DNA of 64,000 nt from positions 186,001 to 250,000 of the forward strand of contig OX337240.1 in the NCBI GenBank assembly GCA_946965045.2, written 5' to 3'. The DNA comes from Epithemia pelagica (lineage: Eukaryota; Protista; Bacillariophyta). This document shows positions 4,080 to 33,055 of this stretch, one piece after another (position 1 is the first letter of the stretch; every line of letters starts with the position of its first letter). The position numbers and the translations under genes are program-made. The notes below the pieces were generated by a model that ran no database searches, was not told the DNA's origin, and saw only the letters and a program-made list of their open reading frames with translations.

Positions 4080-4088
4080 CTCCCTCTT
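4080..4088 (-). promoter_or_regulatory. Polypurine tract
   Basis: AAGAGGGAG on the minus strand, immediately upstream of the 3' LTR. Confidence 0.8.
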
Positions 4089-4105
4089 GGGCTTGGTGTC
4101 ACAGG

Positions 4106-12216: not shown

Positions 12217-12230
12217 TGGGCGTAATAACC
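12217..12230 (-). promoter_or_regulatory. Putative primer-binding site
   Basis: GGTTATTACGCCCA directly after the 5' LTR; resembles the internal (half) tRNA-Met type PBS GGTTATGGGCCCA of Drosophila copia. Confidence 0.6.
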
Positions 12231-12733: not shown

Positions 12734-12928
12734 GTCCCCATCCTTGATCGTGTTCGTTGCCTTGAGGAAAACCACCACATTGTCCACTCCAAAGATTGTT
12801 AAAGTCTCCCCGATCGTCCGAAGCTTTCTCTTGTCATCGTGAAGCACCATAAAACCGTTGGGGAGGTGAAGGACACTGGTTGGTTGGTTGATTGCTTCGT
12901 CCTCTAGCTGCTTGTTGCTGGTGTCCAT
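12734..12928 (-). pseudogene. 5' part (65 codons) of the host ORF split by the copia element
   Basis: ATG at 12928 (MDTSNKQ...IKDGD) is in frame with 3571-3227 once the element and one target copy are removed. Confidence 0.65.
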
Positions 12929-13345: not shown

Positions 13346-13840
13346 GTGAAGGGCAAGACAACCAAACAACCTCTCTCTCTTCCAGCAATCACCAAAACGA
13401 GCAAGAGCAACAAGGGCAACAAGACCAACAAGATCAACAAGACCAACGAGAGCAACACAACCAACGAGAGCAACAAGGGCAACACGACCAACGAGAGCAA
13501 CGAGAACAACACGACCAACGAGAGCAACGAGAACAACACGACCAACGAGAGCAACAAGGGTAACACGACCATTGAGAGCAACAGGGGCAACGAGAGCGAC
13601 ACGACGAACAAGGGCAACGAGAGCAACAAGACAAACGAGACGAACGAGAGCAACAACGCGAATCACAAATTGCCCATCAATGCGTCAGTCTTTGGAAGGT
13701 ATCTCACCAGTGACCGCCGTGTCAGCAATGTGTCAGCTTCTAGTTCATCCTCGTACGGTGTAGACAGCAACCTGTCCTTCGACTTTATGGAAACGCAGCA
13801 GCAGGAGCTGGACATTCATGACGACTGGTCTAATAGCTAG
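13346..13840 (+). CDS. Hypothetical N/T/E/S/K-rich repeat protein (164 aa)
   Basis: Open frame across a ~27-bp tandem array encoding TNESN(K/E)(G/N)N; may be non-coding repeat. Confidence 0.35.
   Translation: MKGKTTKQPLSLPAITKTSKSNKGNKTNKINKTNESNTTNESNKGNTTNESNENNTTNESNENNTTNESNKGNTTIESNRGNESDTTNKGNESNKTNETNESNNANHKLPINASVFGRYLTSDRRVSNVSASSSSSYGVDSNLSFDFMETQQQELDIHDDWSNS
13398..13658 (+). repeat. Degenerate ~27-bp tandem minisatellite (accaacgagagcaac core)
   Basis: Repeated acgaccaacgagagcaac followed by aagggcaac or gagaacaac. Confidence 0.9.
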
Positions 13841-14399: not shown

Positions 14400-14642
14400 A
14401 TAAACTTACTCCCTATCAGACTATGAAAGTAGTGAGTCTCACCCGGGTCCATTTAACAAACTAGACATTACCAGAAATGTCGCTGAGACAGCCTACGACA
14501 GGGGCACTAGTAGCAAGATTTCAAACCATCCGTTGTGACTATCATCTAAGGAAGGAACGGTACGCCAGTTTATGGCGGTTTAATTATCGATAAGAAAGCA
14601 CCCCTAAGCGCATCCTACTAGAATCATCCGCGCGCAGGACAC

Positions 14643-14870
14643 GCGCACACCTACAAGAACATGCGCACACCTACAAGAACATGCACACACCTACAAGAAC
14701 ATGCGCATGGCCCTTCCTCACGTTATTACTAAAAATGTGCTTTCCAGAACCAGCAAGCGCATGACCCACATTTCACCAACTTCAACACCATGCACAGTCA
14801 AGAACCAATAGTCATCACATCCCTCCACCTTCATGCACAGTCAAGAACCAACACTCATCACATACCCTCC
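14643..14870 (+). repeat. Left subterminal repeats
   Basis: gcgcacacctacaagaacat x3 (14643-14702) and catgcacagtcaagaacca...catcacat.ccctcc x2 (14789-14870). Confidence 0.9.
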
Positions 14871-15070
14871 TATGTATGCACTCATCCTTGATTGTGTCAC
14901 ATCACCATCATGCGCATTACTCCAGCATCAAGTGCAAGCAAGTTGAACACAGTGCATTGAACTAACACCATGCACACACTCCCACTAACAACCAGCGAAT
15001 GAATGGAACACAATACATGTAGCTATATAGGAGTAGTATATGAAATGAAACCAATTGTCACTCTGATCAA

Positions 15071-17063
15071 TCACTGCCACGACCGTTTTCGTGGCCTTTT
15101 AGAAGGCCTTGTCACAGCATCATCATCTGCATACCCCATTCGAGAGCGATATTGCCCATTGAGAAACATCATGAACCAGATACCGCGGTCGCCTGCTCTG
15201 TCTTCACGAGCGATTTTCTCTTCCATATCCTCAAAATAGTCCATACCATCCTCATTCATACATCGACTTGAGTTCCAACTGCCTGAATATTTGAAGCGAG
15301 GATACCTTGCTGAGGATGTATCAATCATTTGATCAACACCATTTTCATTGTACCACCTTGGATTTAATTCAAATAGTCTCGCCTTGAAAGTGGTCTTGCC
15401 CATGTGAGTCCACACATCCCAGCAATCCACAAGGATGGTCAATATGAATGCCTCGTCACTTGAAGTGAATAACTTCAAGGCCTTTTCGCAATGTTCCTTT
15501 CCCTGCTGCTCAGTGTGGTCACCAAAATTGAAATCAATCACGGTTTTATGCATATTCTCACCATAGACACATGGACCAAACAATTGCAAGAGATATGAAT
15601 AGGCATAGTTGTCACACTTCTCTCCTCTCAATAACAGAAATTCTTCCAGGGTAGGCATTGGCCCAAAGTCTTCACAGTCGTTCAAAAGGCATGGATACCT
15701 CCGCTGGAAATTACTGTCACGCCATAGATCAAGACCCACATGTTCTAGATTCAGCAACAAATTATCTCACATCTCTTTATGAGAAGACGACATGATGAAC
15801 CAACACATTCACTCTTCGATTGACACTTACTTATAAATGCTTTTCGCATGGAAGCCAGAACATTTGATCGTTTGCTTCGGAACTTGTCAAGCATATAAGG
15901 TGAATGTTCAATCCACCACTCCTCTTGTTGTTTTGCATCCGTAATGCCTTTGCCTTTGAAATAGTGCTCAGCAAAATATGTTTTGCCATACTTCCCCCAA
16001 AGACCATTCGGATCTGCCTTAGTATCTTCGGACATGGAGAAATACTTGACATAACGCCATGCCACCTTCCGAACAAATGTATCAAAGAACTTCTCCGATA
16101 CCACCTCAGGCTTTTTCTTCGGCTTTTGCTTTTTATTCTTGTCCTTTTCGACAGAACCTTTGTGTGTAGTGGATGTTACAATCGTACTTGTCGGGCAAGA
16201 TGATTGATTATGGTGTACTGTTGTTTTCTGTGTTTCCTGTGCCAACTGATTTTGAATATCGTCTTGTAGAAGAGTTTCCATCGCCTGATCAGGCCCTGTT
16301 GTTAGCAAAGTAGATGATGAAGATGACGACATATCCGAAAGGGAAGAAACGTCGTTAGCAAAGGTATCACCTGATGCATTCAACCCACAAACACCCCCGT
16401 CATTAGAGCCGTCTCACCGACAAATTGTCCTCCTCCATTTTGTGCATCTAACAACTTACTGACAAGTCCTCCAGCAGGAAAATGTCTCTCATTAGGATCA
16501 AAATCATCTCCATCATACTCACTGGGTCCATTGCTCATATTCTGCAATGCTCGTTGCATTTCAGGTCCAGTGAGAATATTTACACCGACGTCGTCCTCCT
16601 CCATGTTATTAACTGCCGTGTTTGTTGGTTGCGCAAAACCAGATGATGGTTGTGTTCTCAGCCCACCCTGTTCATTATTGCTATCATCTGCTGAAGTCAC
16701 ATTGGCTCCATCTCTTTCTGAATTTGTTGCCTGCTCCAAAAGATTACCACTCCCTTCCACAGTTGTGCCTTCTTGTGCTTGTGCTTGATTGTTGTTCATC
16801 GAGATCTGTTCCTCTTCTTCCTCGTCATCAGAACTATCTTCTTGGAGTACTAAACCTCCATTGGCTGCTGCAATAAGAGCATCTTTGTTTGTAATTGTCC
16901 CGTCCTTGTAAGGAAGATTCTCTTTATTTCTTGTTGCCACTGCTGCCAAGATGCTTCTTTGTTGTCGTTCAACCTCTTTCTGATTACTTCCATAGTTTGC
17001 ATTTCGGACTGCTAAGGGTCGACGCGTCGTTGGAGCTGCATAACTGGTGGTGACTCCTGCCAT
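15071..17063 (-). CDS. Three-exon transposon accessory protein (~620 aa), divergent from the transposase
   Basis: Predicted exons 17063-16418, 16370-15831 and 15744-15071; GT-AG introns of 47 and 86 bp restore one frame. Motifs SKRSNVLASMRKAF, SSDEAFILTILVDCW and GMDYFEDM. Confidence 0.65.
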
Positions 17064-17627
17064 CGTTTATCTTGGATGCTCCGTCTGATTTATGACAAGG
17101 ATGTGAACAAGAGCAGGGTGACAACAAGAACTCTGATGGACAACCATTCAAATTCAAACGCTGGAATGCTCCATGTTTGAATCATAAACTCCGTGTTTGA
17201 ACGATGGTCCTTTAGAGAACGTATGAAGATGAGCATAGGTGGTTTCAAGTACATCATACTTGTCAGATGGAACATTGGTGCATGGGTTTGAATGATTGTC
17301 ATTTCCTTTCTAATGTCGACAGTGTCGGTATCCTCGGCATTGACACAGTGTTTGAATTCCAATCGCTGCTATCACCGTTGGTATCTAACCCGGCAGGCTG
17401 GATTGGATTAAGTAAATACACACGACCGTTTGAAAATATTATGATCCGTTCATGTACATAAGCGATTTTCAGTCGCTTTTATGCACCAACGTCGGCCGAT
17501 CCACCCAATGCGGAGAAATTCTGATATATGCCACAAGATTGACCACCGATGTCTCAATTTGCAGAAATCAATTACAGAGCATTTTTCATTACAAACCAAA
17601 ATCTAAAACCACCAGCATCGTACCATC

Positions 17628-20600
17628 ATGGGCCAGCGTCGTAAAGTAAAAAAGAAGTTGCGAAAGAGATGCTCAAATACAAGCCAACAAGAGGAGTCCT
17701 TCATATCCTTTCAAGTGTGTCGTTTCTGTCAATCACGTTTCGATGCAAGAGGAATCAGCCGTCACGAAACAGTTTGTGAATTGAAAATGAACACCCAAAG
17801 GAAATGGCCAAATGTTGGCGATGACAACAATGATTGTGCCAGTAATATGAATGCTGATCCAATGAATATTGATATCATGGACGATGAAACCACTATTCCG
17901 CATGCTGACCCACCAAAAGCATACTATGTACCTGGTGATACAGATAATATTATTCTGCGCAACAGCAAGGAGTGCCCGGTTGATTTTCCTGCGTTCCTCG
18001 ATAGAGATGGGAAGCAATTGAAACTTCATAAACACGATGCAGCCTTGGTCTCACTTATGATGTTACTTCGGAAAGCTGGTTGCCCCAAATATTTGTACAA
18101 TTCGATTCTGGCATGGTCGAGTGACACATACTCAAGATGCGGTCCTGGGTTCTTCCTGGACAACCATTCAAAGAGGAAAACGTTCATCGAAAAGTTTTCT
18201 TCCAAAGGTTTCAATTATCCCAAGGCCAAATTTTTCCCGGTACCAATGGAATTCACCCAAAAACAGGGTGTGGTTGTACCAGAGAGTGAGAAATCAATAA
18301 CAACACCAGTATTTGATTTGATCAGTCAACTACAGCGTGTATTACAAGATCCCGATGCAACCAAGAAAGAAAATACGATCCTCGATGATGACGATCCGTA
18401 TCGTCCATATGTTCCAAACAAGCACATCCAAAATATACAAGACGGAGAAGTATTTCGGAAAACAGTGGAAAAATATAGAGATGATCCAGATGCCTTCGTG
18501 GTTGGTCTTGTCTATTATATGGACAAAACACATGCAACAGGGGATGGAAGATATACATCGGAGCCTGTTGTAATGGTGCCATCTTTTCTAACGGAAACAC
18601 AAATGAGGAAAGCAAGGCGACAGATCATCCTTGGGACTATTACAGACATGGAAAGAAAATCATCGGCGGCAAAACATATCCTCGATAAAGGGACTCCTTG
18701 CCGAAATTATCATGCTCAATTGACTAAGATCCTCGAAGGTCTCGTCAGTATCCAAAAACAGGAAGGTTTATGGATGAAACTACGCCTCCATGGGATTATC
18801 AAAGTTGTCCGTTTGATATTGCCAATGATTGTTGTCAAAGGAGACGGGAAGTCTCAGGATAACCTTGCAGGTCGGTATGCCTCGCATCATCCAAGTGTTG
18901 GAAGACTATCATGGTGTTGCAACATTAAACCAAGGGATAGCAGATACCCATGGCATGAATGTTCTTATATCAATGCTGCAAGTACATACAAAATGTGCTT
19001 AAATGCATTGGGTCTTAATGAAAATCGAGAAAAACTGACTGAACAGGATGTTGATTACCAAGAGAGAGACAATGATACATTTTCGACTTTGACTGTTCCT
19101 ACCTGTTTGAGCACATCGCAAGTAAGTCAAGAAAATAACAGAGATGGAGGGGTCAATACCCTTGTGTCAGCTGCAAAAACCCAATTGCATGACATGGGAC
19201 AATATGCAGTCGATCTTTGTTTTTCCAAGGTTTACCTGGGTGAAGGAACCAATTCTGAACATGGGATTTTCTCGGCCAGTAGTTGTGATGTTCTTCATAC
19301 ATTGAAATCTGGGATAATGAGATACATCATGATTGACTTTTTCACGTTGATGACAAAAACTGAACGGGCCATGTTTGATTATGTCTACAATTCAATCTTT
19401 CGGGCAAGTAGACAGACTGTATTCTCGTATTCATCGAAACTTGGATATCCCGGAACATCATTCTCGACCGGGATCAGTAACCTGTCAAAAGTAACTGCCA
19501 ATGAGTGGGTTGGGATCATGTTTGCTTCAGCAGCTCTATGTGCCACTGCCAGAGGTCGCCTTATATTCGCGAAGAATATGGCAAAGAAATGGAACAAGGT
19601 GGTTGCGGAATGGAAAAAACGACAAGCAAAGCAAACATCCAAAACCACCAACAAGACATGTCAAGCGGACTTGGATCAAGTGCAAGAGACAAGTGAACCT
19701 ATTGCTGACAATGAGGATGATACTCCAAAAGATGAAGAGTACGAACTTACACGTCTTGATGATGATGATAGTGTTGACATTGATATCACAGCTGAAACTG
19801 TTTTTGATGATGACCCAGTTGCTTACAGGTCTATCTGGGATGTTGATGAGCGGGAACCATACATAGACTTCCTGCATCTATTCGAGACTCTTTTGTGTTT
19901 CAACAGCTGGATTCGTATGGATACATTCTGGGAAACAGACCCAGACTCACAAGAAGGACAAACAACAGCATCCAAGTCTCTCGAATCAGTGCGGATTTTG
20001 ATGGATGGCATCAGGAGATATGCACCCAGGCTCGATAAAAAAGGCAAATTGATGTCCAACGGGTGGATGATACCAAAATTCCACAATCTCATACACATTA
20101 TACAACAGATTCAGAATTTTGGACCAGCACGACTGCTTGATGTGGAGTCAGAGGAAAGTAATCATAAGGAAATTGTGAAATTGAATGCAAAAACGGTACA
20201 GAAACGTGGAAAAGGAATTTTTGAGTCGCAACTTGCAGAAAATATCTGGTGGATGCAAAGCTTGGAAATGCTGCAGGAAGCAACAGATCTTGAAGAAGAT
20301 CATGTCACCTTTCTCCAGGAAGGGAAGTCGCCTTATGAAATAAGGAGAAAAAAGGGATCCCAAAACCAACTCCCTACCACATCAACCTCGAATAGCCGTG
20401 GAACGGTCATAGTAGTATCCATGACCAGAGAAAAATGTTTGATTCCAGTACCTCACACGAACGTTCATACCTCTGGTGATAATCAAGACCAGTCATCAAA
20501 TGAAATAGACAAGGATCTTCCGTCTCCATTGGGTATGTCGATTCAAGTTCCAGGCACGACCAGAAAAGAACAAGACGGATCAAACCGAAACCAGACGAGT

Positions 20601-21485
20601 AGCGTACACAGGCGATTGACAGCAGCACCACACGAGGAGGATGTGGTATCAGTGAATATCGAATTCCATTCCAAAACAAATCATGACATGACATTGCCAC
20701 AGTTTTGTAATCACTTCTTTCGATTACATTACAAACGCTTTTTTCATCATTTAGACGGGATGAGTGATGATCCAACAAATGAGACTTCAACCACACTGGA
20801 ATTGTTCGGGAGCACAGAACTTAAGTTCGAAGACCCCAGGATAGGAAATATACGGGCTCATCCAAATTATCAAAGCGAGGGGCCATGGAGAGATTGGGTG
20901 ATGGCTAAAGTTCCAAAGAAAAAAAGGAAACCTCTTGATGAGGTATACAACCAACCTCTCGGAGAATTTGATACCATCCTATGTCAAACGATATGCTTCA
21001 TTCAAATACCCATTACTCGAACAGACCACATACAAATACAACCATCACCGGTATGTCAACCTTCAACTTCACCCGAGATGACCCATGTCCTTCTCCGAAC
21101 GACATATGTACGGAGTGCAGCTGATATCAAGAAATCATCCGTTCTCTTTCAAAAATGGCGTAAGCGTTTTGACCTACATCGAATAGCTGAAATTGTCATG
21201 GTTCCACTCCGGAATATTGTTGAGGTTGTTGGTGTAGTGGATGAGAACCCAGAAATGATTCAAGACCGTGATTCTATCCCAACATATTTCCATTCTTCAC
21301 TTGAAAAAGATTTACTCCAAGAAGACAGTCGTAATTTGAGAAACTTTAGTGACAATGTCTGGGCCGTACGCAACATCAAAGAATGGGCTTCCGAATTCAA
21401 TGAAAGTGCCCGTGACAATCTCGAGAAACGCTGTAATGAAATGAAAGAAAGATTGAAACAATCCGTTAGCAATTCGACCTCATGA
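17628..21485 (+). CDS. Plavaka-family DDE transposase (1285 aa) with N-terminal C2HC-type Zn finger
   Basis: CRFC..RH..C; YMDKTHATGDG..EP; KGDGKSQD; CDVLHTLKSG; FSTGISNLSKVTANE; IPKFHNLIH..I..FG...ESEESNH..VK; AHP..EGPWRDWV. These match Plavaka transposase motifs in order; the ORF is intact. Confidence 0.85.
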   Translation: MGQRRKVKKKLRKRCSNTSQQEESFISFQVCRFCQSRFDARGISRHETVCELKMNTQRKWPNVGDDNNDCASNMNADPMNIDIMDDETTIPHADPPKAYYVPGDTDNIILRNSKECPVDFPAFLDRDGKQLKLHKHDAALVSLMMLLRKAGCPKYLYNSILAWSSDTYSRCGPGFFLDNHSKRKTFIEKFSSKGFNYPKAKFFPVPMEFTQKQGVVVPESEKSITTPVFDLISQLQRVLQDPDATKKENTILDDDDPYRPYVPNKHIQNIQDGEVFRKTVEKYRDDPDAFVVGLVYYMDKTHATGDGRYTSEPVVMVPSFLTETQMRKARRQIILGTITDMERKSSAAKHILDKGTPCRNYHAQLTKILEGLVSIQKQEGLWMKLRLHGIIKVVRLILPMIVVKGDGKSQDNLAGRYASHHPSVGRLSWCCNIKPRDSRYPWHECSYINAASTYKMCLNALGLNENREKLTEQDVDYQERDNDTFSTLTVPTCLSTSQVSQENNRDGGVNTLVSAAKTQLHDMGQYAVDLCFSKVYLGEGTNSEHGIFSASSCDVLHTLKSGIMRYIMIDFFTLMTKTERAMFDYVYNSIFRASRQTVFSYSSKLGYPGTSFSTGISNLSKVTANEWVGIMFASAALCATARGRLIFAKNMAKKWNKVVAEWKKRQAKQTSKTTNKTCQADLDQVQETSEPIADNEDDTPKDEEYELTRLDDDDSVDIDITAETVFDDDPVAYRSIWDVDEREPYIDFLHLFETLLCFNSWIRMDTFWETDPDSQEGQTTASKSLESVRILMDGIRRYAPRLDKKGKLMSNGWMIPKFHNLIHIIQQIQNFGPARLLDVESEESNHKEIVKLNAKTVQKRGKGIFESQLAENIWWMQSLEMLQEATDLEEDHVTFLQEGKSPYEIRRKKGSQNQLPTTSTSNSRGTVIVVSMTREKCLIPVPHTNVHTSGDNQDQSSNEIDKDLPSPLGMSIQVPGTTRKEQDGSNRNQTSSVHRRLTAAPHEEDVVSVNIEFHSKTNHDMTLPQFCNHFFRLHYKRFFHHLDGMSDDPTNETSTTLELFGSTELKFEDPRIGNIRAHPNYQSEGPWRDWVMAKVPKKKRKPLDEVYNQPLGEFDTILCQTICFIQIPITRTDHIQIQPSPVCQPSTSPEMTHVLLRTTYVRSAADIKKSSVLFQKWRKRFDLHRIAEIVMVPLRNIVEVVGVVDENPEMIQDRDSIPTYFHSSLEKDLLQEDSRNLRNFSDNVWAVRNIKEWASEFNESARDNLEKRCNEMKERLKQSVSNSTS

Positions 21486-21681
21486 TCATAATTTGCCTCT
21501 ATGGGGGGTTGTCACATACCAGCACTCCCCTCCTAATCTCCCCCCCCAACCGTACGCGAGCCGACCAATTCAACTCAGAGTGTCACACACAAATTGGATG
21601 AAATAGTAGATACTTTCCATCGTTTTCCAAAAGTCATCCTCAGTCTTCAGTCAGTAAGGCTATTCTACTCCTCTTCAAACA

Positions 21682-22809
21682 ATGATCAACCCATACAAAT
21701 CGAGGAAGAAAACAGTTCTACCCTTGGTGGTCAAACCAAACTTTCCAGTCACAAAGATACCTCCATCTAATGAAGAAATGATGATCAACCCATACAAGCT
21801 AGAGGAAATAGAGACCCCCATGGTCAAAACGCACTCTCCAACCCCGAAAACTTGCGACGGTGAACATGACAAGAAGCCACCGCCTGCGTCCAAATCAATA
21901 ATCAAATGTCATCCACTTCCTTCTTCGAAGCTTGATACCAAGGAAGAAGAAGAGAAGAAACTTCCACCAATCAAGCGCCCATCGTATCAGTTGATCCCAA
22001 ACCCATATAAGAAGAAGCTCAAGGTTGCTGATCCATCTACTATTCCAATCTTGCTATTACATGACTCTCCTCCAATGTGTAAACCAAGAGCAAACCGAGA
22101 TAAGCTGCATCTCGAAGTTATTCGGTTCACTGAGCTTGTCAATAAAATCTATGGATCCAATGATGTTCCCCCAGAGCCAGTCTGTCCTTGGTGTTTTGTA
22201 ACCGACAACCTTTCAACAGATCGTAGACTTACAGGAAAATGTTGGCATCGCTTCGGTAAATCTCTCTCATGTGCCGATTGTTGTTATGGTTGTGGAGTGC
22301 CCATGAACGGATGTGATTCAGGTGGGAATGAACGTTGTTGCACCGAAGCCCTGTATATCCATGATTCGATGAATATCACACGCGAAGAATCAGACATAAA
22401 CAAGGTTCCATTGGTGTGTAAGTCTTGCTTAAGGCCATGCAATTCTTATTCAGAATGCGTCTTCTCGCATGGTTGTTGGAACTCTTGCAACAAGTACTTC
22501 GTCTGGCGATTCTGTCATATTGCTGGACGGGCGTTGGTGTACTCACAATTGAAGCCCAATTGCAAAGGACCAGGCACGATTCCCAAACATGCACAGGATA
22601 TTATCAAAAACGCAACAGAGTTGATGTACAACGAACTGCGAGATCCGATGGAGTCTTCTCAGTACACATCTCCATTTTGTCATGTTCTTGACCAAGACTC
22701 CTGGTCTAAATGGCTTGTCTCCATGTCTTTCGGTCGATACTACAATTACATGCCGTTCTTCCGTCATTGTTACACAGCCTTGATGTCTTCATCGAAACCA
22801 TTGTATTAA
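21682..22809 (+). CDS. Cys-rich hypothetical protein A (375 aa)
   Basis: Lys/Pro-rich N-terminus with repeated MINPYK; many CxxC; NKYFVWRFC and WSKWLVS..NYMPFF. Confidence 0.75.
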   Translation: MINPYKSRKKTVLPLVVKPNFPVTKIPPSNEEMMINPYKLEEIETPMVKTHSPTPKTCDGEHDKKPPPASKSIIKCHPLPSSKLDTKEEEEKKLPPIKRPSYQLIPNPYKKKLKVADPSTIPILLLHDSPPMCKPRANRDKLHLEVIRFTELVNKIYGSNDVPPEPVCPWCFVTDNLSTDRRLTGKCWHRFGKSLSCADCCYGCGVPMNGCDSGGNERCCTEALYIHDSMNITREESDINKVPLVCKSCLRPCNSYSECVFSHGCWNSCNKYFVWRFCHIAGRALVYSQLKPNCKGPGTIPKHAQDIIKNATELMYNELRDPMESSQYTSPFCHVLDQDSWSKWLVSMSFGRYYNYMPFFRHCYTALMSSSKPLY

Positions 22810-22870
22810 ACAAACTCTCGACTTCTTCGAAAGGCAAACTGGGAACAGATAACAAGATTTATAATATATG

Positions 22871-23938
22871 TCAATGATCATTACCATCCATATTTCCACG
22901 TTCCAACTCCGCCCTCTCAGCCATTCTTTCGAGACAATTACGGAAGCACCTGACAAAGAGTGGCATGTAGTTGCGAAAACCAGCCGTAGAATGAGGCAAC
23001 GAAAGCAACCATACTGCCCATGTTTTATCAGATGCTCGGGCATAATCGTATGGGGCACAATCGTTATCATCAAAATAGAAACGGGATCGCAATTCTTCAA
23101 GCCAAACGCTGCGGACAATAGTAAACATTGGCCAGGTGATTTGACGGGGAAAGTTCACACCATCGTAAAATGATGTTATTTGAAAAGTACGCGCCACAAT
23201 ATGGCGTATAAGCATACAGAACTGCCACACGAAGTGCTTGTTCTCAGATTCCACACAGACACTGCATGAATCCAAATCTGGTTGTGGAATCCCAAAAGGT
23301 ATTGAGCGTTCGGGAATTCGGAAACATTCCCTACACACCTGACAATGAAATGTTGGATGCCTGTGGCGGTGACATAAGTTACAACGCATCAAAAAATTCT
23401 GCTGCCAGATAACTGAATAATCGAGATATGCCGCACGTGTTACCACTGTAGTATTTCCATGATTGCACTGGTGATGTGGTGTGGGACGACCAAGGATAAC
23501 ACAGTATGGACAGAGTTTCTCACCTCTAAGCATTTCGTCAACTAACCGTTTGAATTCAGTCTGGATTTCATGACCAACACGCATCTCTTCTCTGAGTTGT
23601 TCTATGACTTGTGGTACATCTTCTTCTTCATTATCGTAATCAAAAAAGATCCTCCCAGCGTCCCTGTAACAAGGCCGATCATTCACTTCCAAGTTCCTGT
23701 CGTTGATCGCCCGCATTTCTCGTCGTCGTCTACGTTCCCGAACATAAAAATCTTCTTCCTCCGATTCTTCTTCCTCCGATTCATCTCCCGATTCATCCTC
23801 CGGTTGGTCCTCTGGATTGTCAGCCATTCTGTTTGCAGTCTCCTTCTCTTTGTTTTGCTGTGAATGCAAATACCTGTACTTGTTGCTTCTTCTTTGGATT
23901 TTTATGAAACCTCTGCTGTCATATGAACGAGAGTTCAA
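22871..23938 (-). CDS. Cys-rich hypothetical protein B (355 aa), paralog of A
   Basis: Acidic N-terminus; CPYC, CNLC, CQVCREC and CSVC; NKHFVWQFC and WAVWLLS..NYMPLF. Confidence 0.75.
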   Translation of the reverse strand: MNSRSYDSRGFIKIQRRSNKYRYLHSQQNKEKETANRMADNPEDQPEDESGDESEEEESEEEDFYVRERRRRREMRAINDRNLEVNDRPCYRDAGRIFFDYDNEEEDVPQVIEQLREEMRVGHEIQTEFKRLVDEMLRGEKLCPYCVILGRPTPHHQCNHGNTTVVTRAAYLDYSVIWQQNFLMRCNLCHRHRHPTFHCQVCRECFRIPERSIPFGIPQPDLDSCSVCVESENKHFVWQFCMLIRHIVARTFQITSFYDGVNFPRQITWPMFTIVRSVWLEELRSRFYFDDNDCAPYDYARASDKTWAVWLLSLPHSTAGFRNYMPLFVRCFRNCLERMAERAELERGNMDGNDH

Positions 23939-24419
23939 CTGGAAATAGATCCACGGATAACCGATCGGTCGTGTTTGTGTACAGAAATCGTCACAATATA
24001 CTATTCACTGTGAGTATTACCACATACTGTGAGGATAAGTGTAATCATTCCCAACATGGTCGCGTTTCACTCGCTGGGCTGACCTATCGGTGTGGCTTTG
24101 CAAAATTCCATGGACATGGAACAATGACATGCTTCTAGAACTCGAATGGCTCCAAATTTTCGTATAGACCATTTGGTTATCATTTGCATGGACGGTAAAG
24201 GCTCTGAACTTGTCTATCATCAACCAAAAGACTTGCAATAGACCCTACCGGTGTGGTGTTGCCGTCGTCCCAAAATTCTATGGACATGGAGCAAAGACAT
24301 TCTTCTAGAACTCGAATGGTTCCAAATTTTCTAGAGACCCTTGGGGTATCATAGGCATTGATTGATGGTAGGTAGTGGTTTTGCTGATAGGTGGGCATGG
24401 TCTTGTATATTAGAAATCT

Positions 24420-27400
24420 CTATTCGTCACTAGATTTCTGGCCCGACGCCAAGCCTCCAATTTCATGAGAATTGTCATCCTCGTTTTGTGTTACGGTAGC
24501 ACTCAAAGATCTTGCATTTGTGCTAAAAAACCAACCAATCGTATGATTTCCCACATTCTTGTCTTTCGGTGGTATGGAGTGTGTATGGACAGATGTTCCA
24601 TGTCTGATGATTCTCCCGTCCCATGCAATCGCAATGCCATGGAATAACCGGATACAAAGCCCATGATAAGTCTTGTCCTTATGCTTTATAAGGACATTGG
24701 GAAGGACGAAATACCAATTGTTGGTGCTACCCGGGTTGGTTTCTGTCCAGATTGTAAAGGACACTGATGCATCATGAATATCATAGTGGCTTGCATTCAT
24801 CAAATCGCAACTCAAAATGATGGATGATGACACACCCCTTTCGTTTCCTCCCAATTCGTTTGGGACATCCAAACCGAAGTTTGTTTCCAGGTGTCTGAAA
24901 GCCGATAACACACCAGGGAATTTCCTCTCACAGAATCGCCGAAAACCTCCACAGATTTTTGGCAATATATTCATCATGTTTGGAGATATTTTGAAAAGTT
25001 TGTCAGAAAAGAATGTACTTCTGCCACCCGTTTTTGTGCACACACCAACAGATGTCATGGTCCCCATATCACCATGGTTACACCTTGCATTGGCTGATCT
25101 CTCTAGTGTACCGCTCTGCGCGAAGTGACATGACCTCTTGTGTAACAATGAAAGTAGGTTTTTGTCATTTTGCTGAAGTGTTGTCACTTTGACATGGCTG
25201 ATGGTTTCGTTTTTACCCGCGTACCCACGTGTCCGAACAATGAATGTTGTATCTTCTCCGGTTTCCCTTACATCAAACAGGAGCGGACGGACCGAAGTAT
25301 CAGGCGGAGGGGACAGGTTTCTATACAATGCTCCATGGACGTACTTTCGGCATCCAGTCTTGTTAGCACTGGCTTTATTCAGCAGTGTTTCACGATACCA
25401 CACTCTAAGAGAATGTTGGTCATTTGGTGTCATTTTTGGTCTGGACTTTTCACTTGTATAATGATCAGGGGCCCAAAGTGGAGAACCACTTTCGACAACA
25501 GACGCTTGGTAGCATTCATGGACAACTCTCTTTGCACTTTGTGTCCAATCAATACACCAACACTTGACAACCTTTTTGAGGAATGCCCCACCACTTGGTT
25601 GGCCGTCGGAATGTCGTAAGCGCAGCCAGGATATAGGTAGTGCTACCAAAGATGAAGTGCATTCCGATGTTGCATACCCAGTATTCATTATCATTGCCGA
25701 AGTATAAAAAATACCGGCCAAAGGGATGATAACGATCACGTCATGGAAAATATGGTCCATACAATCATCACAGTTCTTCTTGGATGTGCGACAATGGAAG
25801 ATTGTATCGTCAAACGCAGACCACACGGTTTTGGGGTATTTCCGATGTCCCTTATGTCGTTGACAGCGATTCAGTACACATTCTACCAAGAAGGCACATG
25901 GAGACCGGGTTGTTAAGAACTTCGGGTCACATTCTGTCACATGAAGCTTGTTGTCTTCGAAACAACAATGGCTTGCTGGATCTTCCGTCACCTCACCAAC
26001 CATGTCTTTCATTTGTTCGTATATGTTAGGTAATTTTCCCATGATTGTCTGGAGGTCTGTTGGTGTGATGTCGTAGTCTTTCAGAACCTTTGTATAGCAG
26101 ATGCCGAACATTCTCCGATCATCATTGCTACTGAGACAGAGTGATAGTAAGTCGCGTAGTCTTTTTGCTACCTTGTCCATGTCAGGAATTCCAAAAAAAC
26201 ACATTTCTGTATGATCGGATTCATTTGGTTTGGAGAATTTTGTCGTCAAATGGCTAGGTTTCTCAGCCTGTCGTCTCTTATACTTCTTCATCGTTTCATG
26301 TGTTAGTGTCAACTTCGATAGGCCCTCTTGTCGTCGTTGCTTGTTCGTGGGTAGTCCCCTGGATGAACCAATGGTCTTACATTCTTTTCTTTTCCTTTCC
26401 GGTGAAGTATTCTGCTCGTCAGTATCGTCATGATTACCGTGTATTGGAGACTTGTGAATCTCCTTCGTACCTCGTTCGTCTTGTATGCGCTGATCCGTTT
26501 GTGTTGTCGTGTTGATGCTACTTCCCTTGTTATGGTCGTTTTTTGTCATTTGGTCATCGTTGTTCTTGTTGCTACCTTTTTGTTTGTCGGTACTATCCTT
26601 TCCTTCTTTGGTTTGTGTCGCATCATCTTGGTTGACACTGTCATTGTGACAGCTAGACGGATTATCACTGTCAGGTGTGTTGTTGGCATTCTTAGACCCG
26701 TTCTCTCCTGAATTTCCGTGTTGTTCGTAAGCAACAATCTCTTGCTTGCCACATTCCTTGCCCTTTTGTTTGTCTGTAGAACCGTTGCCATCTCTGCTTT
26801 GTATCTCTTCTCCTTGTCCACATTCATCTTGGTGACTGGAGGTTGCTTTCTGACCGCTCTGTCTGTTCCGATCATCCCTCTCCTGATTGTCCTTGGAATT
26901 CCAACCAAGTTTGGATAGGCCATCCTGCCCTCCACGACTCGCTGTAGTGTGATGAATGTCCTTTTCTCTCTCTCTACGAGGTGATTGATTTGGTTGACTA
27001 TTACCTCTATCAGTTGAGGGACGGTTAGGCTCTCTCTGGCGGGTACGCCTAGAATGATCGTTGTGTCCAGGATGACTGTCTCTAAGTGACAAATGGTGCC
27101 TGGAATGTTCGTTGTATCCAGGGAATCTCTCCCAATCCATCGGATCCATCGGATGTCGATTAGACCATTGATTGTGGCTATCTCTATATACCGAATGGTG
27201 CCTTGTATGTTCTCTGGAATGTTTGTTGTATCCAGAGAATCTCCTCCAAACCATCGAATGTCGATTAGACAATTGATTTTGATTATCATGTCTTCTTTTT
27301 CTATCCCGGTAAGTGTTTTCCATGATTTGATCTCTTCTCCCTCTAGACTCGTCTTGGTGGTTATCATGGTATCCATGTTGGTCTTGTCGTTCAATGACTC

Positions 27401-29726
27401 CTCTTCTAGTTTGTTGGTTATCTTGATCGAAATGTGAATGACGAGACCCATGATAATCCGATGTATTAGATCCTCTCGATCCTGGATGATCATCATTGAA
27501 TCGATTCTGTCCATGCTGACAATACACTGGCCTGTCATGTTCAGGTAGCGAACCCCACTCATTTGTTCTGGGGCTTCGAGTTGTCGACAGGACGTTGTTC
27601 TGATTCCGTCCTCCCCACAGCCCATGTGGATTCTCTCTCTTGTCCTTGGTTCTTTCGTTATCATGTTGGGTTTGCTCTGTTCTATGTCTTTCTTCAGGCA
27701 GCTCACTCCGGTTACCCCAATTCGCAGGCATTGCAACGGAACGTGATGAGTTATTTCCTCCCCACTGCTGGTATTTAGGCTTCTCACCCTCTGGTGACTG
27801 ATAGATTGCTTTGTGTTCAGAAGGATGAGTATATGTTCTTTGAACAGAACGTGTCATAGGACAGAAGTACAATAGACTTTGAATATCCTGGCTGCACACC
27901 ATACATGTGTTGTGGCCCCGCTGCATCCAATCTCCAACACATTCCCGACAAAATGTATGTCTACAAAGAAACAGTTCGCAATCCACTTTTCTGGTCATAC
28001 AAATCGAACAAACCTCGGGCTTGTATTTTGTCTCAACTCCTCTTTGTTCTAGTGTTGATGGCTTGTTACTCACGGGTGATTTTTTTGATGATTCTTCAGG
28101 GCGTCCCTCAATTGTAGTTGTAGTGTCTTCGACTGTTTTCCTATGTCCCTCTTCAGGGAATCCCTCGCTCGTAGTTGTAGTGTCTTCCGCTGTTTTCTTG
28201 TGTCCCTCTATCTTCTCCGCACCAAACATGTGGATGTTACTCTTGATCTTTTGTCCACACTGGGGACACCATACATTATGATACTTGAACCGTATTCGTA
28301 AGCAATTTCCGTGAACCAGATGTCCACATGGGATGAGGGTACAGACTTCGCTGTCTGTATCTGTTTTCAATGCCCTGTGACAGCATACACAAGAATCTGG
28401 ACAATATACAACGGTCGGTAGCAATCGATTTATATCTCTCTTGGAAAGTTTGGAGTCAAGTAACACCTCCTTGGGTTCTAATCCCACCTTCGGGCACGGT
28501 ATGAACAATATGTCACCATCCGTAGTCCACGTCTCTGAACACCCACCATCAGATAGATCGACGTTCTCCTGGTATTCGTATTTATCGGTACCACGTGAAA
28601 ACCCCACTTCAACAGGATCGTCGTCGCTGTTGCCATCGGAATTGTCAGGTCCCAACACCAAAGGAGAAATCGAATTGCCACCAACAGCATGCTCTAGTCC
28701 TCTCGAAAATTCATTATTGTACCGTATTTGATTACTCGAAAAACAATTGGATATCGTCATACTCTTGTCTATCTGACCTTCTTTCCGACCCGGGTTTGGT
28801 CGACTACTCATTATGTTTCCAAGCATTCTGATCACAATAGCTTGTGGCATTGGCTTTGGAGTATCCTTCTTAGGTTCTGGCATTTTCACAATGCGATATC
28901 GCCACTTGTTACATTCCTTGTTTGTATCATGTGTTGTTTCATCTTCTTCCACTAATGATGGGTCATAACATAGACTGACAGGCGGGGCACCTTTTGACGT
29001 ATTGACCAGGTCCCATTTCCGTAGTACATGACGCGTCGTTCCTTCCCAGTATTGGTCTGATCGATTATGTATTGGTTCGTAGATATGAAGTATCTTTTTG
29101 TCGATTTCGAAAGCCAATAAAGCTGGGTCGCTGACATCAGTTGCTGTTGTCAAGGCAATGATCGCCAATATCAGTGTGTTCGGATCCTGTTGTCTCCATG
29201 ATGACATAGGAATTTTCTTAGGAAATGGGTTCCTGTTTGCTTCATCAAATGTTACTTTGTCAACATATACTAGGTTCTGATGGTTGTGATGGACCATCAA
29301 TTTCAAACAAGTATAGAAAGACTCAATCGGCATGCCCGTCCTTGAAGTGTTGTAGCAAAGATCTCTCCGACGATGTCTATGTGGGATATGCAAAACACGC
29401 GTTGTAGGGTCCTGGTCATTCATCAACCCACTGTAAGACATGCATAGTGTGCACCTAAATAATGTCTTGATTTCGACATGCGTGTTGTCCTTCCCCATAC
29501 TCTTAGCATACTGGGTTGCTAGCTTCATGGCCGACTTGATGTTCTCGTTGTTTCTGTTAGTTTGTTTTTCCGCGAACTTGTCCAAGTAACCGTCACCAAT
29601 GTTGTCGATGGATTCATTCGAGTCCCATGAGTCTTTTCTTCTCTTCTGGTTTACTATAGGATCAAGAACGTGTGGAATTTCAATGAAAGGCGGTGGTACC
29701 ACACCATCACCTGTCTCCTCATTTCC
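24420..29726 (-). CDS. Giant protein: two RING fingers + low-complexity linker + C-terminal TET/JBP-like Fe(II) dioxygenase domain (main exon)
   Basis: RING-H2-like CVCC..CGHLVHGNC..CPQC (~28256-28391); C3HC4 CSIC..CRHTFCREC..CMVC (~27894-28011); HGDMGTMTSVG; NASHYDIHD (HxDxxD, His at 24786-24788); WYFVLP..LFHG..WDGRIIRHGT (His at 24600-24602). Confidence 0.8.
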   Translation of the reverse strand, partial: GNEETGDGVVPPPFIEIPHVLDPIVNQKRRKDSWDSNESIDNIGDGYLDKFAEKQTNRNNENIKSAMKLATQYAKSMGKDNTHVEIKTLFRCTLCMSYSGLMNDQDPTTRVLHIPHRHRRRDLCYNTSRTGMPIESFYTCLKLMVHHNHQNLVYVDKVTFDEANRNPFPKKIPMSSWRQQDPNTLILAIIALTTATDVSDPALLAFEIDKKILHIYEPIHNRSDQYWEGTTRHVLRKWDLVNTSKGAPPVSLCYDPSLVEEDETTHDTNKECNKWRYRIVKMPEPKKDTPKPMPQAIVIRMLGNIMSSRPNPGRKEGQIDKSMTISNCFSSNQIRYNNEFSRGLEHAVGGNSISPLVLGPDNSDGNSDDDPVEVGFSRGTDKYEYQENVDLSDGGCSETWTTDGDILFIPCPKVGLEPKEVLLDSKLSKRDINRLLPTVVYCPDSCVCCHRALKTDTDSEVCTLIPCGHLVHGNCLRIRFKYHNVWCPQCGQKIKSNIHMFGAEKIEGHKKTAEDTTTTSEGFPEEGHRKTVEDTTTTIEGRPEESSKKSPVSNKPSTLEQRGVETKYKPEVCSICMTRKVDCELFLCRHTFCRECVGDWMQRGHNTCMVCSQDIQSLLYFCPMTRSVQRTYTHPSEHKAIYQSPEGEKPKYQQWGGNNSSRSVAMPANWGNRSELPEERHRTEQTQHDNERTKDKRENPHGLWGGRNQNNVLSTTRSPRTNEWGSLPEHDRPVYCQHGQNRFNDDHPGSRGSNTSDYHGSRHSHFDQDNQQTRRGVIERQDQHGYHDNHQDESRGRRDQIMENTYRDRKRRHDNQNQLSNRHSMVWRRFSGYNKHSREHTRHHSVYRDSHNQWSNRHPMDPMDWERFPGYNEHSRHHLSLRDSHPGHNDHSRRTRQREPNRPSTDRGNSQPNQSPRREREKDIHHTTASRGGQDGLSKLGWNSKDNQERDDRNRQSGQKATSSHQDECGQGEEIQSRDGNGSTDKQKGKECGKQEIVAYEQHGNSGENGSKNANNTPDSDNPSSCHNDSVNQDDATQTKEGKDSTDKQKGSNKNNDDQMTKNDHNKGSSINTTTQTDQRIQDERGTKEIHKSPIHGNHDDTDEQNTSPERKRKECKTIGSSRGLPTNKQRRQEGLSKLTLTHETMKKYKRRQAEKPSHLTTKFSKPNESDHTEMCFFGIPDMDKVAKRLRDLLSLCLSSNDDRRMFGICYTKVLKDYDITPTDLQTIMGKLPNIYEQMKDMVGEVTEDPASHCCFEDNKLHVTECDPKFLTTRSPCAFLVECVLNRCQRHKGHRKYPKTVWSAFDDTIFHCRTSKKNCDDCMDHIFHDVIVIIPLAGIFYTSAMIMNTGYATSECTSSLVALPISWLRLRHSDGQPSGGAFLKKVVKCWCIDWTQSAKRVVHECYQASVVESGSPLWAPDHYTSEKSRPKMTPNDQHSLRVWYRETLLNKASANKTGCRKYVHGALYRNLSPPPDTSVRPLLFDVRETGEDTTFIVRTRGYAGKNETISHVKVTTLQQNDKNLLSLLHKRSCHFAQSGTLERSANARCNHGDMGTMTSVGVCTKTGGRSTFFSDKLFKISPNMMNILPKICGGFRRFCERKFPGVLSAFRHLETNFGLDVPNELGGNERGVSSSIILSCDLMNASHYDIHDASVSFTIWTETNPGSTNNWYFVLPNVLIKHKDKTYHGLCIRLFHGIAIAWDGRIIRHGTSVHTHSIPPKDKNVGNHTIGWFFSTNARSLSATVTQNEDDNSHEIGGLASGQKSSDE

Positions 29727-29826
29727 CTTGTTTATGGAAGCACAACGTCTCTAAGACAAAGAGATCAATCATTTTTGAGATTGTCTAATCCTTCTCGATT
29801 CTTGGCAAGTCGCTCGAACATCTTAC

Positions 29827-30876
29827 CTCGTTGTCTGCGGTTTTTTCATTGTCGTCGCTTATAATCTTCCTGACCTCTTCCACACGGTCTGATTTGAGGG
29901 CGACTTGGTTCGACGTTGTAATGGAAGTTGGTAGTACTTGATCCTTTTTCTCGTCAGTAGGATCATTACCAGCGACGACCTTCTGTCTCTTTTTTGCCGG
30001 CGAGTCTATACTCCGACGTTGCACGGCAATTTCTTTCGATTTCCTGGCAGACAGTACCTCTTGTTTTTCTATATAATGCAGTAGATCGTAGAACATACCG
30101 CCATCGTCTCCGTTTCTTCCATATTGTACCAAAGAATCTCTTTATTCAAGGTACATCTTGAACCATGTGTCAGGCATCGTATACAACAGTGCTTTCTCCA
30201 TTTGGATATTGGAAATCACGTCCATGTTCTCGTCCGATGTCGATTCTGAGATGAAACGGTGTATGGCCACCATATGTTCGATAACCCATGCGATTTTACC
30301 AACAGGTACGAGACGCGGTTTCCTGTAAAGGGAGGAATCATCTAGAAGGTATCGTTTCAATGCTTCTCCAATCCCACCGATCCCCTTGCGTGTCTTCTTA
30401 GAGACTAAGCCATGAGAGGAAAGAAATCTGATAATGGTTTGTCTCAGATTCTCAGCACCGTCTATAACTGTCGTCCCAAATGCCTGATTCCAAATATTGG
30501 AAACAGGACTGTAGAGAGTCTTTTTGAACAATAGTCGAGCAACCATTGGAGTCAACTTGTCATCATCATCCATCTCGTTCTCAATTCTTGTGAAACAGAG
30601 AACGGAGTGACAGATGATATCTTGGAATGCAGGCAAATAACAGATTGGTAGGAATATCTTCACATAATGGCCGTCATGTGGTACCTCCACTGTTGTCCAT
30701 TTTCCTGATTTGTCTTGGAAAACACTTTCATACCAATTGAGGACACTTTCGTATGTAATGGGCATAATACCGGTGTAGTGAGATTCCTCGCTTGTGTGTG
30801 TTCGAAGTGTATGATTGGTACCAGAAACAGTCATAGTCGACACGTCCTTTCTTTTGTTTCGCACTTCATCATTCAT
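29827..30876 (-). pseudogene. Probable upstream exon of the TET/JBP-like gene, interrupted by an in-frame TAA at 30142-30144
   Basis: ORFs 30876-30142 and 30132-29785 are in the same frame. A 100-bp intron 29826-29727 (GAG|GTAAGA...AACAAG|GGA) joins them in phase to the large ORF, which has no ATG of its own at its 5' end. Confidence 0.55.
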
Positions 30877-30969
30877 TGAAGAAGGGTCACCAGGATTCTT
30901 GGCGGTCGGTGGTTTTTGTAGCGAGGGCCCTTGATGCGGTTGCCCGCCATTTTGTACTTGTCACGATGC

Positions 30970-32290
30970 GCTTTTTGTGTAGCGTCTTTGTTTCAACAAC
31001 AAGAACAACAAGGGTAGTCGAGGAAGCGCTTTAATTGTAGCGTCTTTGAGACAACCTTGTGTACTTGTCTAAACAGTAAAAAGTGTGCGCTGAATTGTGT
31101 AGCGTCTTTGGTTTGGTCCTGAACTCTGGTGGTAACAAAACAACAACCAAATCGAAGGAATACACTACGACGCGCTTTATGTGTAGCGTCTTGTTCGTTG
31201 TGATCCAACAATCGGTGCCAGAATTTGCTACTCCAAAACCAGGGGTTGGTTGGTTGTCCAAGCAATCTCGCGACAAGAATAGAACAGAAGCAACTGGCTA
31301 CCACCGTGTCACACTGCTTGCTTTGGGTCTGTTCTATTCAAGTCGGAGTATCACGAGGACAGGAGGGTTCTTGATAAACAATCTAACAGATAGCCCGAAA
31401 CCGCTTTAATTGTAATAGCGTGATTGGAGTGAAGGACAGAGCTGAGTGAAACAAGCAACAATCAGACAGATGCCCCAAGCCGCTTTAATTGTAGCGTGGT
31501 GATTGGAATGGCAGAGCTGCAAGATAGTGCAAGTGTCAAAGATAGGACAAATGTTGACAATATTTCGAATGCTCTGGTGGTCGTTCTTCTTCTTGGGTTC
31601 CTCTTCTTCTTGTTTTCCTGTTGTAGCGGTTTTGGAGTGAAGGTCGTGGTTGAAAGGAAGCAAGCAACAATCAGACAGATGCCCCAAGCCGCTTTAGTTG
31701 TAGCGTGATTGGAATGGCAGAGTTGCAAGATAGTGCAAGTGTCAATGTCTCGAATGCTCTGGCCGTGCTTGAGTTCCTCTTCCTCTTCTTCTGGTGCAGC
31801 GGTTTTGGAGTGAAGTGTTGTAGCGGTTTTGGAGTGAAGGTCGTGGTTGAAAGGAAGCAAGCAACAATCAGACAGATGCCCCAAGCCGCTTTCATTGTAG
31901 CGTGATTGGAATGGCAGAGCTGCAAGATAGTGCAAGTGTCAATGTCTCGAATGCTCTGGCCGTGCTTGAGTTCCTCTTCCTCTTCTTCTGGTGCAGCGGT
32001 TTTGGAGTGAAGGTGGCTGAAGAGGAAGCAAGCAACAAAAAGGTGGCTGAAAAGGAACCAAGCAACAATCAGACAGATGCCCCAAGCCGCTTTAATTGTA
32101 GCGTGATTGGAATGGCAGAGCTGTTAGGTTGATGAAAGAAGTTGGATAGGTGAAAGGATTGAAAAGGGAATCTCGGCAGAGAGAAAGCAAGCAACAAAAA
32201 GGTGGCTGAAAAGGAACCAAGAAACAATCAGACAGATGCCCCAAGCCGCTTTAATTGTAGCGTGATTGGAATGGCAGAGCTGTTAGGTTG
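30970..32290 (+). repeat. Right subterminal tandem repeat array
   Basis: Core aagcaacaatcagacagatgccccaagccgcttt..tgtagcgtgattggaatggcagag at ~31453, 31662, 31859, 32060 and 32219, with a degenerate copy near 31377; shorter tgtagcgtctt repeats at 30970-31190. Confidence 0.9.
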
Positions 32291-33055
32291 ATGAAAGAAG
32301 CTGGATAGATAATGGGATTGAACAGGGGAATCTCGATAGCGTTCGGTGATCGGTTGTTGTTGTTGCTGCTGCTGCTGTTGTTGTTGTTTGTTGTGGTGTG
32401 TTGGGTGGAGGTGGAGGGAGATGAATGAGCATCGATTCTGGTGGTCGTTGATTGTTGAATGACTAGTATGCTAAGTTGTTCAGTTTTCTTTGGGACATCC
32501 ATGTGCGTCAGTCTTTCTGGCAGCTGCTGTGTGATGTGGTGGGAGTGGAAATTCGTGATTCAAAGGTGAGGGGACAGACGCTTGCGCATGAGGGTTGCGT
32601 CATGCGCGTCTCGGGGGGGTCGAGCGCGCCAGATAGTTGTAGTGCGCATTATCGGAGTGTGGCGCGCGTTATTCGTGGTTTGATCGCGGGCTTGTGCGCA
32701 TTAAAATTGTGGCATGCGCGTGATAGTCAGCTCGATCTCTAGAACTAGCTAGAGAAATGTGCATTGTTAGACCTAGATTTGCAGATTTAGTTGGAAAAGC
32801 AGGATTATAGTTAAAAACTGCGCATATAAAAATAAACTGCGCATAAAAAATTTTAATTCGGCGAATTTTTTCTAGAAATTCGCTTTTGGGGGTGGAAATC
32901 AAGCGCCAGGGCCCATTTCCCTCCTTAGATGATTACTTAGGCCCCCCGATCTCGTCGACGTTCCTTCCCTCTCGTTCTCGAAAATCAGGAAGGAAGGAAG
33001 ACCATGAGATTGTGCTTTCGACGGCTCCATCCTACCTAAACCAGTGTTTTGAACC

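Follow-up and report, generated by a model that had tools for sequence, protein, structure and literature searches.

Can a DNA transposon outside the fungi carry its own enzyme against the cytosine methylation that silences it? The question is raised by a 64,000-nt stretch of the Epithemia pelagica genome (contig OX337240.1, positions 186,001 to 250,000; hereafter, the window), in which positions 14543-32931 form an element of 18,389 bp encoding a Plavaka-type transposase and a large protein that joins two RING fingers to a dioxygenase domain of predicted TET/JBP fold. We consider it probable that this element is an autonomous, recently active giant cut-and-paste DNA transposon of the Plavaka lineage and, jointly, that its TET/JBP-fold cargo serves to escape methylation-based silencing. 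Of the candidate enzymatic defences that mobile DNA may raise against cytosine methylation, TET/JBP genes borne by transposons are the clearest. Iyer et al. are said to have described, in 2014, TET/JBP genes travelling with Kyakuja/Dileera/Zisupton and Plavaka transposons in basidiomycete fungi. Such genes have been recorded on transposons of Basidiomycota and Pezizomycetes (Kojima 2025, PMC12730594). A full-text literature search returned no paper joining TET/JBP, diatom and transposon, and the Plavaka and Kyakuja/Zisupton literature that was found contained no stramenopile case. The partnership of Plavaka with TET, and probably its purpose, is therefore known already, in the searchable literature only from fungi. 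New here are the host group, the RING-RING-TET architecture, the divergent enzyme clade, the unusual co-substrate site and the extra conserved genes.

The region stands out in a listing of open reading frames (ORFs), a repeat search and base composition, with a drop in G+C (~0.42-0.46) from ~14.5 to 33 kb and long ORFs on both strands. Its ends were located by comparison with two further copies taken from the ENA assembly ERZ21939226, namely copy 1 (L001/L005, ctg1273l) and copy 2 (L002/L004, ctg1341l); locus L003 is the window copy itself. In BLASTN alignments similarity begins exactly at 14543 for both copies and stops exactly at 32931 for copy 2 (L004), and copy 1 has lost its last 69 bp, being cut at a point equivalent to 32862 by an insertion with reverse-transcriptase genes. 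At these ends lie terminal inverted repeats (TIRs) of 15 nt starting with 5'-CATCT: the left one (14543-14557, plus strand) reads 5'-CATCTAAGGAAGGAA and the right one (32917-32931, minus strand), as its reverse complement, 5'-CATCTAAGGAGGGAA, with 14 of the 15 bases matching. An AT dinucleotide read from the sequence on either side (14541-14542 and 32932-32933) represents the target-site duplication. The initial annotation had placed the element at 14541-32933. The element indeed lies inside that span, but the exact ends were not correct since both AT dinucleotides had been counted in. The accompanying description of an inverted-repeat-bounded, subterminally repetitive unit of ~18.4 kb is borne out by the TIRs, the copy boundaries, clusters of the motif ATGCGCA and tandem arrays.

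The target-site duplication is 2 bp long, AT/AT in the window copy and GA/GA in copy 2. The latter copy interrupts a copia-type pol gene (L002 5509-6966 with L004 5974-7770, ctg1341l). Removing it in silico together with one GA yields a continuous 1217-aa copia ORF across the junction, whereas removal of 0, 1, 3 or 4 bases does not restore this ORF; the reconstructed empty site therefore fixes the duplication length at 2 bp. Copy 1 gives no such test because a retroelement truncates its right end. What follows the end of copy 1 is a gypsy-type retroelement carrying genes for RVT_1, RNase H and rve (L005 6944-8612, ctg1273l). The three copies are 98.7-99.3% identical to one another and transposition was therefore recent. 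Each of these three full or near-full copies holds the dioxygenase gene between the element ends. The window copy is not fully intact, a gene of 388 aa being broken in it, though its transposase and dioxygenase genes are intact. When another copy with both ends was sought through the protein of the Cys-rich gene B described below, only copy 2 was recovered. A young element outside the fungi, with several copies, exact ends and intact genes, implies that the Plavaka and TET partnership is older, or more often re-invented, than thought. It also offers a tractable system, in which copies with and without intact genes stand side by side in one genome and can be read with methylome data.

Which kind of transposon is it? 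Kojima 2025 (PMC12730594) split Plavaka into A and B, with 2- or 3-bp duplications and CATCA..TGATG termini in PlavakaB, and every TET-carrying Plavaka family in that study falls in PlavakaB. The window element and copies 1 and 2 end in CATCT..AGATG, which shares 4 of 5 bases with this pattern, and together with the duplication length these termini fit the PlavakaB lineage. The transposon thus appears closest to PlavakaB, within the CACTA/EnSpm-Mirage-Chapaev-Transib clade. Its transposase gene (17628-21485, plus strand) is intact and encodes 1285 aa. A word-based search with the transposase returned only itself, and a repeat search with residues 270-900, the catalytic region, gave P0169, a protein that scores 45.2 bits on Pfam Plavaka PF18759 (cut-off 26.3) and aligns with residues 288-874 of the transposase at 7e-42 in BLASTP. 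D406 and E843 are invariant across nine relatives, and D299 is conserved in every row covering it. These three residues stand within the motifs YMDKT, GDxKSQDN and ExxxK, and from this motif context we infer that they form the catalytic triad. In the ESM Atlas the nearest clusters are Plavaka clusters carrying PF18759, which we take as a lead only. The 90%-identity cluster of the transposase has 53 members; those listed all come from ENA, five or more of them at full length.

The dioxygenase gene occupies a 1760-codon ORF on the minus strand (24420-29702), with Met59 at 29528 as the probable start of a 1702-aa protein, and the ORF is intact in three of three copies (1699-1702 aa). RING finger 1, RING-H2-like, spans residues 438-482 (28257-28391, minus strand) and was recognized as a second zf-RING_2 stretch in the Pfam scan and by a regular expression. 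RING finger 2, of the C3HC4 type, spans residues 565-603 (27894-28010, minus strand) and matches the same kind of expression as well as zf-C3HC4_3 (30.5 bits, cut-off 27) and zf-C3HC4 (27.1 bits, cut-off 21). Among all proteins of the element, scanned against Pfam down to E = 10, the RING fingers were the only matches. A long low-complexity middle part, called as a long disordered linker, separates them from the C-terminal 581 aa (24420-26165, minus strand), where a Cys-rich lead-in precedes a predicted TET/JBP-type double-stranded beta-helix. The HxDxxD...H motifs reported in the initial annotation are present there as NASHYDIHD...DGRIIRHGT and supply the putative Fe(II) ligands H1639 (24786-24788), D1641 (24780-24782) and H1701 (24600-24602), all on the minus strand. 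Likewise, all the genes it had listed (transposase, accessory gene, two Cys-rich paralogues and RING-RING-dioxygenase) were found again by ORFs, BLASTP and motif matches.

Through an exhaustive phmmer search with the C-terminal region, 652 homologues (E up to 1e-3) were collected, and 51 of these were aligned. Invariant in the alignment are H460, D462, D465 and H522, which correspond to H1639, D1641, D1644 and H1701 of the full-length protein; a Pfam scan of the same 51 gave a single weak Tet_JBP match (E 0.0055). The AlphaFold model built on this alignment is of good confidence, with a predicted local distance difference test score (pLDDT) of 83.8 and a predicted template-modelling score (pTM) of 0.87. 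With this model Foldseek ranks human TET2 best (9e-11), followed by CMD1, CcTET and NgTET1, and FTO is five orders of magnitude weaker. The structural matches in AlphaFold-DB are JBP2, CMD1, NgTet, JBP1, TET1-3 and clusters named 'Tet-like 2OG-Fe(II) oxygenase'. The identification as a TET/JBP-like enzyme has therefore survived the check for a non-nucleic-acid oxygenase, TET/JBP structures ranking best in both searches. It is an assignment by predicted fold: sequence identity to human TET2, Naegleria NgTET1, Chlamydomonas CMD1 and Coprinopsis CcTET, all with solved structures, is only 7-13%.

The active site provides some clues regarding the substrate. In the characterized enzymes the residue at HxD+3 (TET2 N1387, NgTET1 D234, CMD1 D350) hydrogen-bonds the N4 amine of 5-methylcytosine (5mC) and also shuts out N6-methyladenine (PMC11040006, PMC7854593). 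D1644 (24771-24773, minus strand) stands at this position, as judged by motif spacing; the spacing is identical and the residue is invariant in the 51 homologues. TET2 and NgTET1 hold 2-oxoglutarate (2OG) by two arginines (PMC7854593). A good candidate for the proximal one (TET2 R1261, CMD1 R244) is R1540, which is present in 47 of the 51 homologues and, placed by sequence position, lies 99 residues ahead of the HxD histidine (101 in CMD1, 121 in TET2). Could the substrate be something other than DNA? The enzyme might act on RNA, or on a protein handled together with the RING E3 module, in transposition or host manipulation unrelated to DNA methylation. We regard such a role as quite improbable.

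Is the pairing of transposase and dioxygenase peculiar to these copies? It is found again in two other places, as expected if the genes belong together. First, another family of this element type, diverged from the first, is present in the same genome at locus L007 (ctg1362l, 2.72 Mb from the start of the window's contig). The gene order is kept there (accessory gene, transposase, Cys-rich A, a Cys-rich B remnant and RING-dioxygenase), and in protein identity to the window element the transposase core stands at 53%, Cys-rich A at 40% and the dioxygenase at 42%. Synonymous sites are saturated between the two families, with ratios of nonsynonymous to synonymous divergence (pN/pS) of 0.32, 0.50 and 0.48, respectively. 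In L007 the gene caller gives two ORFs for the transposase, and the ORF of the dioxygenase, 647 aa long, has a RING-bearing ORF upstream of it; Cys-rich B seems to be degraded. Second, L009, from a distant lineage in another assembly (ERZ28668935), encodes a 1721-aa protein whose C-terminal domain is 27% identical to the window dioxygenase. Tail-to-tail to this protein lies a Plavaka-like transposase of 1263 aa (22% identity, E 4e-30; profile score 1222 bits), which in turn has the accessory gene head-to-head with it. These findings also bear on the possibility that the extra genes are host genes captured passively that serve no function for the element. In red algae and Amoebidium, large Plavaka elements do carry varied cargo, and the 388-aa gene is already broken in the window copy. 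However, the gene order is common to two families with saturated synonymous sites, pN/pS is 0.3-0.5 for the dioxygenase and Cys-rich A, another assembly holds the same transposase-dioxygenase pair at 22-27% identity, and the catalytic residues are invariant. Passive capture is in our estimate very improbable, and the 1702-aa RING-RING-dioxygenase would instead be a long-term cargo of the element.

The fusion with RING fingers has a narrower distribution than the dioxygenase. None of the 150 dioxygenase homologues listed has a RING motif, the second family (L007) shows a RING match, and the fusion seems, as far as these sequences go, to be confined to families of the Epithemia pelagica genome. 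On the metagenome scaffold L008, a RING-finger gene of its own (8982-10079) is found 2.2 kb away from a dioxygenase homologue of 756 aa. The similarity of this RING gene is limited to the RING motif (2e-4), and the pair may be an unfused counterpart of the RING-TET fusion.

Is there evidence of methylated cytosine on the element? The differences among the three copies were polarised, the two closest copies being scored with copy 1 as outgroup. Between these two, CpG to TpG/CpA accounts for 26 of 128 changes, with a per-site rate of 0.019 vs 0.0037 at other C/G sites (~5-fold); over all three copies it is 63 of 283 changes (5.7-fold). The observed/expected ratio of CpG is 0.76 in the element and 0.86 and 0.94 in the flanks. 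Fast CpG decay is the usual signature of CpG methylation. The element copies therefore appear to be methylated at CpG, and the presumed 5mC substrate would thus exist on the element.

The distribution of repeats suggests where such marks could matter. The left subterminal region (14558-15070) contains ATGCGCA/ATGCACA motifs with 20-bp and 43-bp tandem arrays (14639-14881), and the right one (32560-32916) contains five ATGCGCA motifs, all on the minus strand. Out of 13 ATGCGCA matches in the 64-kb window, 10 fall at 14661-14917 or 32583-32844, each less than 400 bp from an element end; of the five at the left end, three lie on the plus strand, and the other two are minus-strand readings where palindromic TGCGCA cores overlap. 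The motif holds a CpG. Further inside, internal tandem repeats of ~159-209 bp in ~5 units occupy 31393-32335, with an array of 159-197 bp units at 31619-32335, and copy 1 lacks 607 bp in this region. At 14635-14990 the repeat units switch between ATGCGCA and ATGCACA, the latter being the product expected from CpG deamination of the former.

Element-encoded factors that lower methylation of an element's own repeats are found in other DNA transposons, namely VANC of Arabidopsis VANDAL and TnpA of maize Spm/CACTA. Spm, a member of the same broad superfamily as the window element, likewise carries subterminal repeats. These proteins differ from the cargo described here in that they are not dioxygenases. 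VANDAL anti-silencing is mentioned in one line of a preprint on giant Plavaka elements of the red alga Bostrychia (bioRxiv 10.1101/2025.02.11.637652). Because of the fungal precedent and these anti-silencing factors, an anti-silencing function of the dioxygenase, one of the roles that the initial annotation had proposed, is plausible; the structural part of that proposal is supported. In such a scheme the host would methylate CpGs within the element, and the element-encoded enzyme would flip out 5mC on element DNA and oxidise or otherwise modify it. Likely targets would be promoters and the CpG-containing subterminal motifs, which are presumed binding sites of the transposase or the accessory protein, so that transcription and excision could go on despite methylation-based silencing. 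The RING fingers would probably add E3-ligase activity against chromatin or silencing factors.

Several observations weigh against this reading. First, the Plavaka and TET/JBP assignments come through transitive homology and predicted fold. The transposase itself gives no direct match to Pfam Plavaka PF18759 even at E up to 10; the direct match looked for after the initial annotation was thus not obtained, and it is the homology through the PF18759-passing P0169 that stands. Similarly, the last 581 residues of the dioxygenase have no Pfam match, including Tet_JBP PF12851 and PF20515, and a hidden Markov model profile of the family run against all PDB sequences found no TET, so that the Tet_JBP identity holds in predicted fold and fails in these sequence-profile searches. 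Second, the CpG decay in the copies indicates that methylation is not fully prevented. Third, no evidence from RNA was found: the organism's runs X1-X3 behave as genomic DNA, and the only RNA-library piece on the dioxygenase domain is a 186-nt sequence, 96% identical, from a poly-A seawater metatranscriptome. Fourth, linkage of transposase and dioxygenase is not universal. L006 holds a transposase and accessory gene with no dioxygenase on its 12.9-kb contig, and L008 and L010 hold dioxygenase homologues with no Plavaka transposase on their contigs. The L010 homologue adjoins a weakly MULE-like gene. Finally, a conserved distal arginine is missing: in the 51 homologues there is no conserved Arg/Lys in the 40 positions after H1701. 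The distal Arg of TET2 (R1896) and NgTET1 (R289) is not conserved here, and a near-invariant Arg stands directly ahead of the distal His instead (R1700 in 48 of 51, with R1697 in 40 of 51).

This last point leads to a rival explanation with the same fold and another chemistry. The second Arg of CMD1 makes no contact with the co-substrate; that enzyme uses vitamin C and makes 5-glyceryl-methylcytosine, and the loss of the contact explains both (PMC7854593). Since the distal Arg is not conserved in the dioxygenase family either, the product of the window enzyme is uncertain and canonical TET chemistry is not assured. The enzyme could write another base modification on the element, for instance a CMD1-like 5mC adduct from a co-substrate other than 2OG or a JBP-like thymine hydroxylation, as a means of self-marking or shielding and not of erasure. 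CMD1 and JBP2 are among the best structural matches, and Kojima 2025 (PMC12730594) leaves further activities open for divergent transposon-borne TETs. We consider this alternative fairly unlikely. Escape from methylation-based silencing, through oxidation or other modification of 5mC by a TET/JBP-fold cargo, remains the reading we prefer. In the ESM Atlas the cluster nearest to the dioxygenase domain is mostly Bacillariophyta, and related sequences occur in marine, sediment and biofilm metagenomes. The element further suggests that marine eukaryotes have a large clade of TET-fold enzymes that has escaped annotation and whose co-substrate site is unusual. A bolder proposal would be that the cargo enzyme founds a Pfam-invisible TET/JBP clade, widespread in marine protists (the 652 homologues), that lacks the distal 2OG-binding Arg as CMD1 does and uses another co-substrate or makes an undescribed base modification, and that in this genome the double-RING E3 fusion lets one transposon protein edit the DNA mark as well as chromatin or silencing proteins in the element's surroundings; as a whole we find this clearly unlikely. 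If the host is a diatom, the element also bears on whether and how 5mC is removed in diatoms. To our knowledge, TET enzymes and active demethylation have so far not been characterised in diatoms.

The closest known systems are the TET-carrying PlavakaB elements of Agaricales fungi (Iyer et al. 2014; Kojima 2025, PMC12730594). Like them, the window element has a Plavaka-type DDE transposase, CATC termini, 2-bp duplications and a TET/JBP-fold dioxygenase gene within the element, for which escape from methylation silencing has been proposed. In contrast, the genome here is marine and apparently that of a diatom, not of a fungus. The element's dioxygenase has two RING fingers fused to it and comes from a sequence family that Pfam Tet_JBP and 2OG-FeII_Oxy_6 miss, and the element, at 18.4 kb, has additional genes, namely a conserved accessory gene, the two Cys-rich paralogues and the 388-aa gene. 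Moreover, the PE type of Kojima, which has Plavaka among its carriers, is defined by HxE, whereas the dioxygenase here has HxD and no conserved distal Arg. A second comparison is with the giant Plavaka elements of red algae, which in Bostrychia are 17-19 kb long and carry the genes PAG1-3 (bioRxiv 10.1101/2025.02.11.637652). The parallels are several conserved accessory genes, tandem repeats beside a cargo gene, and a cargo protein of 2OG-oxygenase type for which modification of the DNA of the element itself has been proposed. However, the PAG3 oxygenase has 2OPW_A, not a TET-family structure, as its best match and is fused to a ParB-like domain, and PAG2 comprises a DNA methylase and a SET protein. 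ParB-like, methylase and SET domains were not found in the window element, and RING or TET is not reported for Bostrychia. In Amoebidium, giant Plavaka repeats carry tyrosine-recombinase cargo.

Four other genes lie within the element. The accessory gene (15071-17063, minus strand), head-to-head with the transposase, appears in the ORF listing as three consecutive ORFs (229, 210 and 227 aa) and is either one gene with short introns or three ORFs. It has no Pfam match and is kept beside the transposase in L007 (35-42% identity, E 2e-42), L006 (5e-15) and L009 (6e-5). Cys-rich gene A (21682-22809, plus strand) encodes 375 aa, and Cys-rich gene B (22871-23938, minus strand) has a called product of 318 aa starting at 23827. 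That the two are paralogous, as first proposed, is confirmed by BLASTP (2e-8) and by the common invariant scaffold CPxC...H...C...CxxC...C...C..NK.F.W.FC. The N-termini of Cys-rich A (window 21682-21990) and of its homologues contain repeated NPY-K/R, for example INPYKSRKK, NPYKLEE and NPYKKK, kept in several homologues. The ESM Atlas leads for Cys-rich A are IBR-like and weak (0.83-0.84, under the useful range), and an AF2 model on an 8-sequence alignment reached a pLDDT of 39 only. The 388-aa gene (29784-30950, minus strand), missing from the earlier gene list and without a Pfam match, is intact in copies 1 and 2 (L001 and L002); it is broken in the window copy by a 1-bp deletion at 30912 and by a substitution at 30144 that neither other copy shares.

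The flanks of the element contain repeats of other kinds. Just beyond its left end, a 9-bp-period array of more than 20 CAACRAGRR units (13354-13682) lies in overlapping ORFs. Directly to the left is a copia-type long terminal repeat (LTR) retrotransposon (3575-12738) with 510-bp LTRs at 3575-4084 and 12229-12738 that are 99.6% identical. Its pol ORF (4106-8191, minus strand) has RVT_2, rve and gag_pre-integrs domains, and a second long ORF (8222-11998, minus strand) has no Pfam match. To the right, a tandem segmental duplication of 8.4 kb (37511-45870 and 48876-57253) is 95.4% identical between its two copies. Each contains an ORF for an aminotransferase of class I/II (41842-43506 and 53221-54879) together with an unannotated one of ~385 aa.

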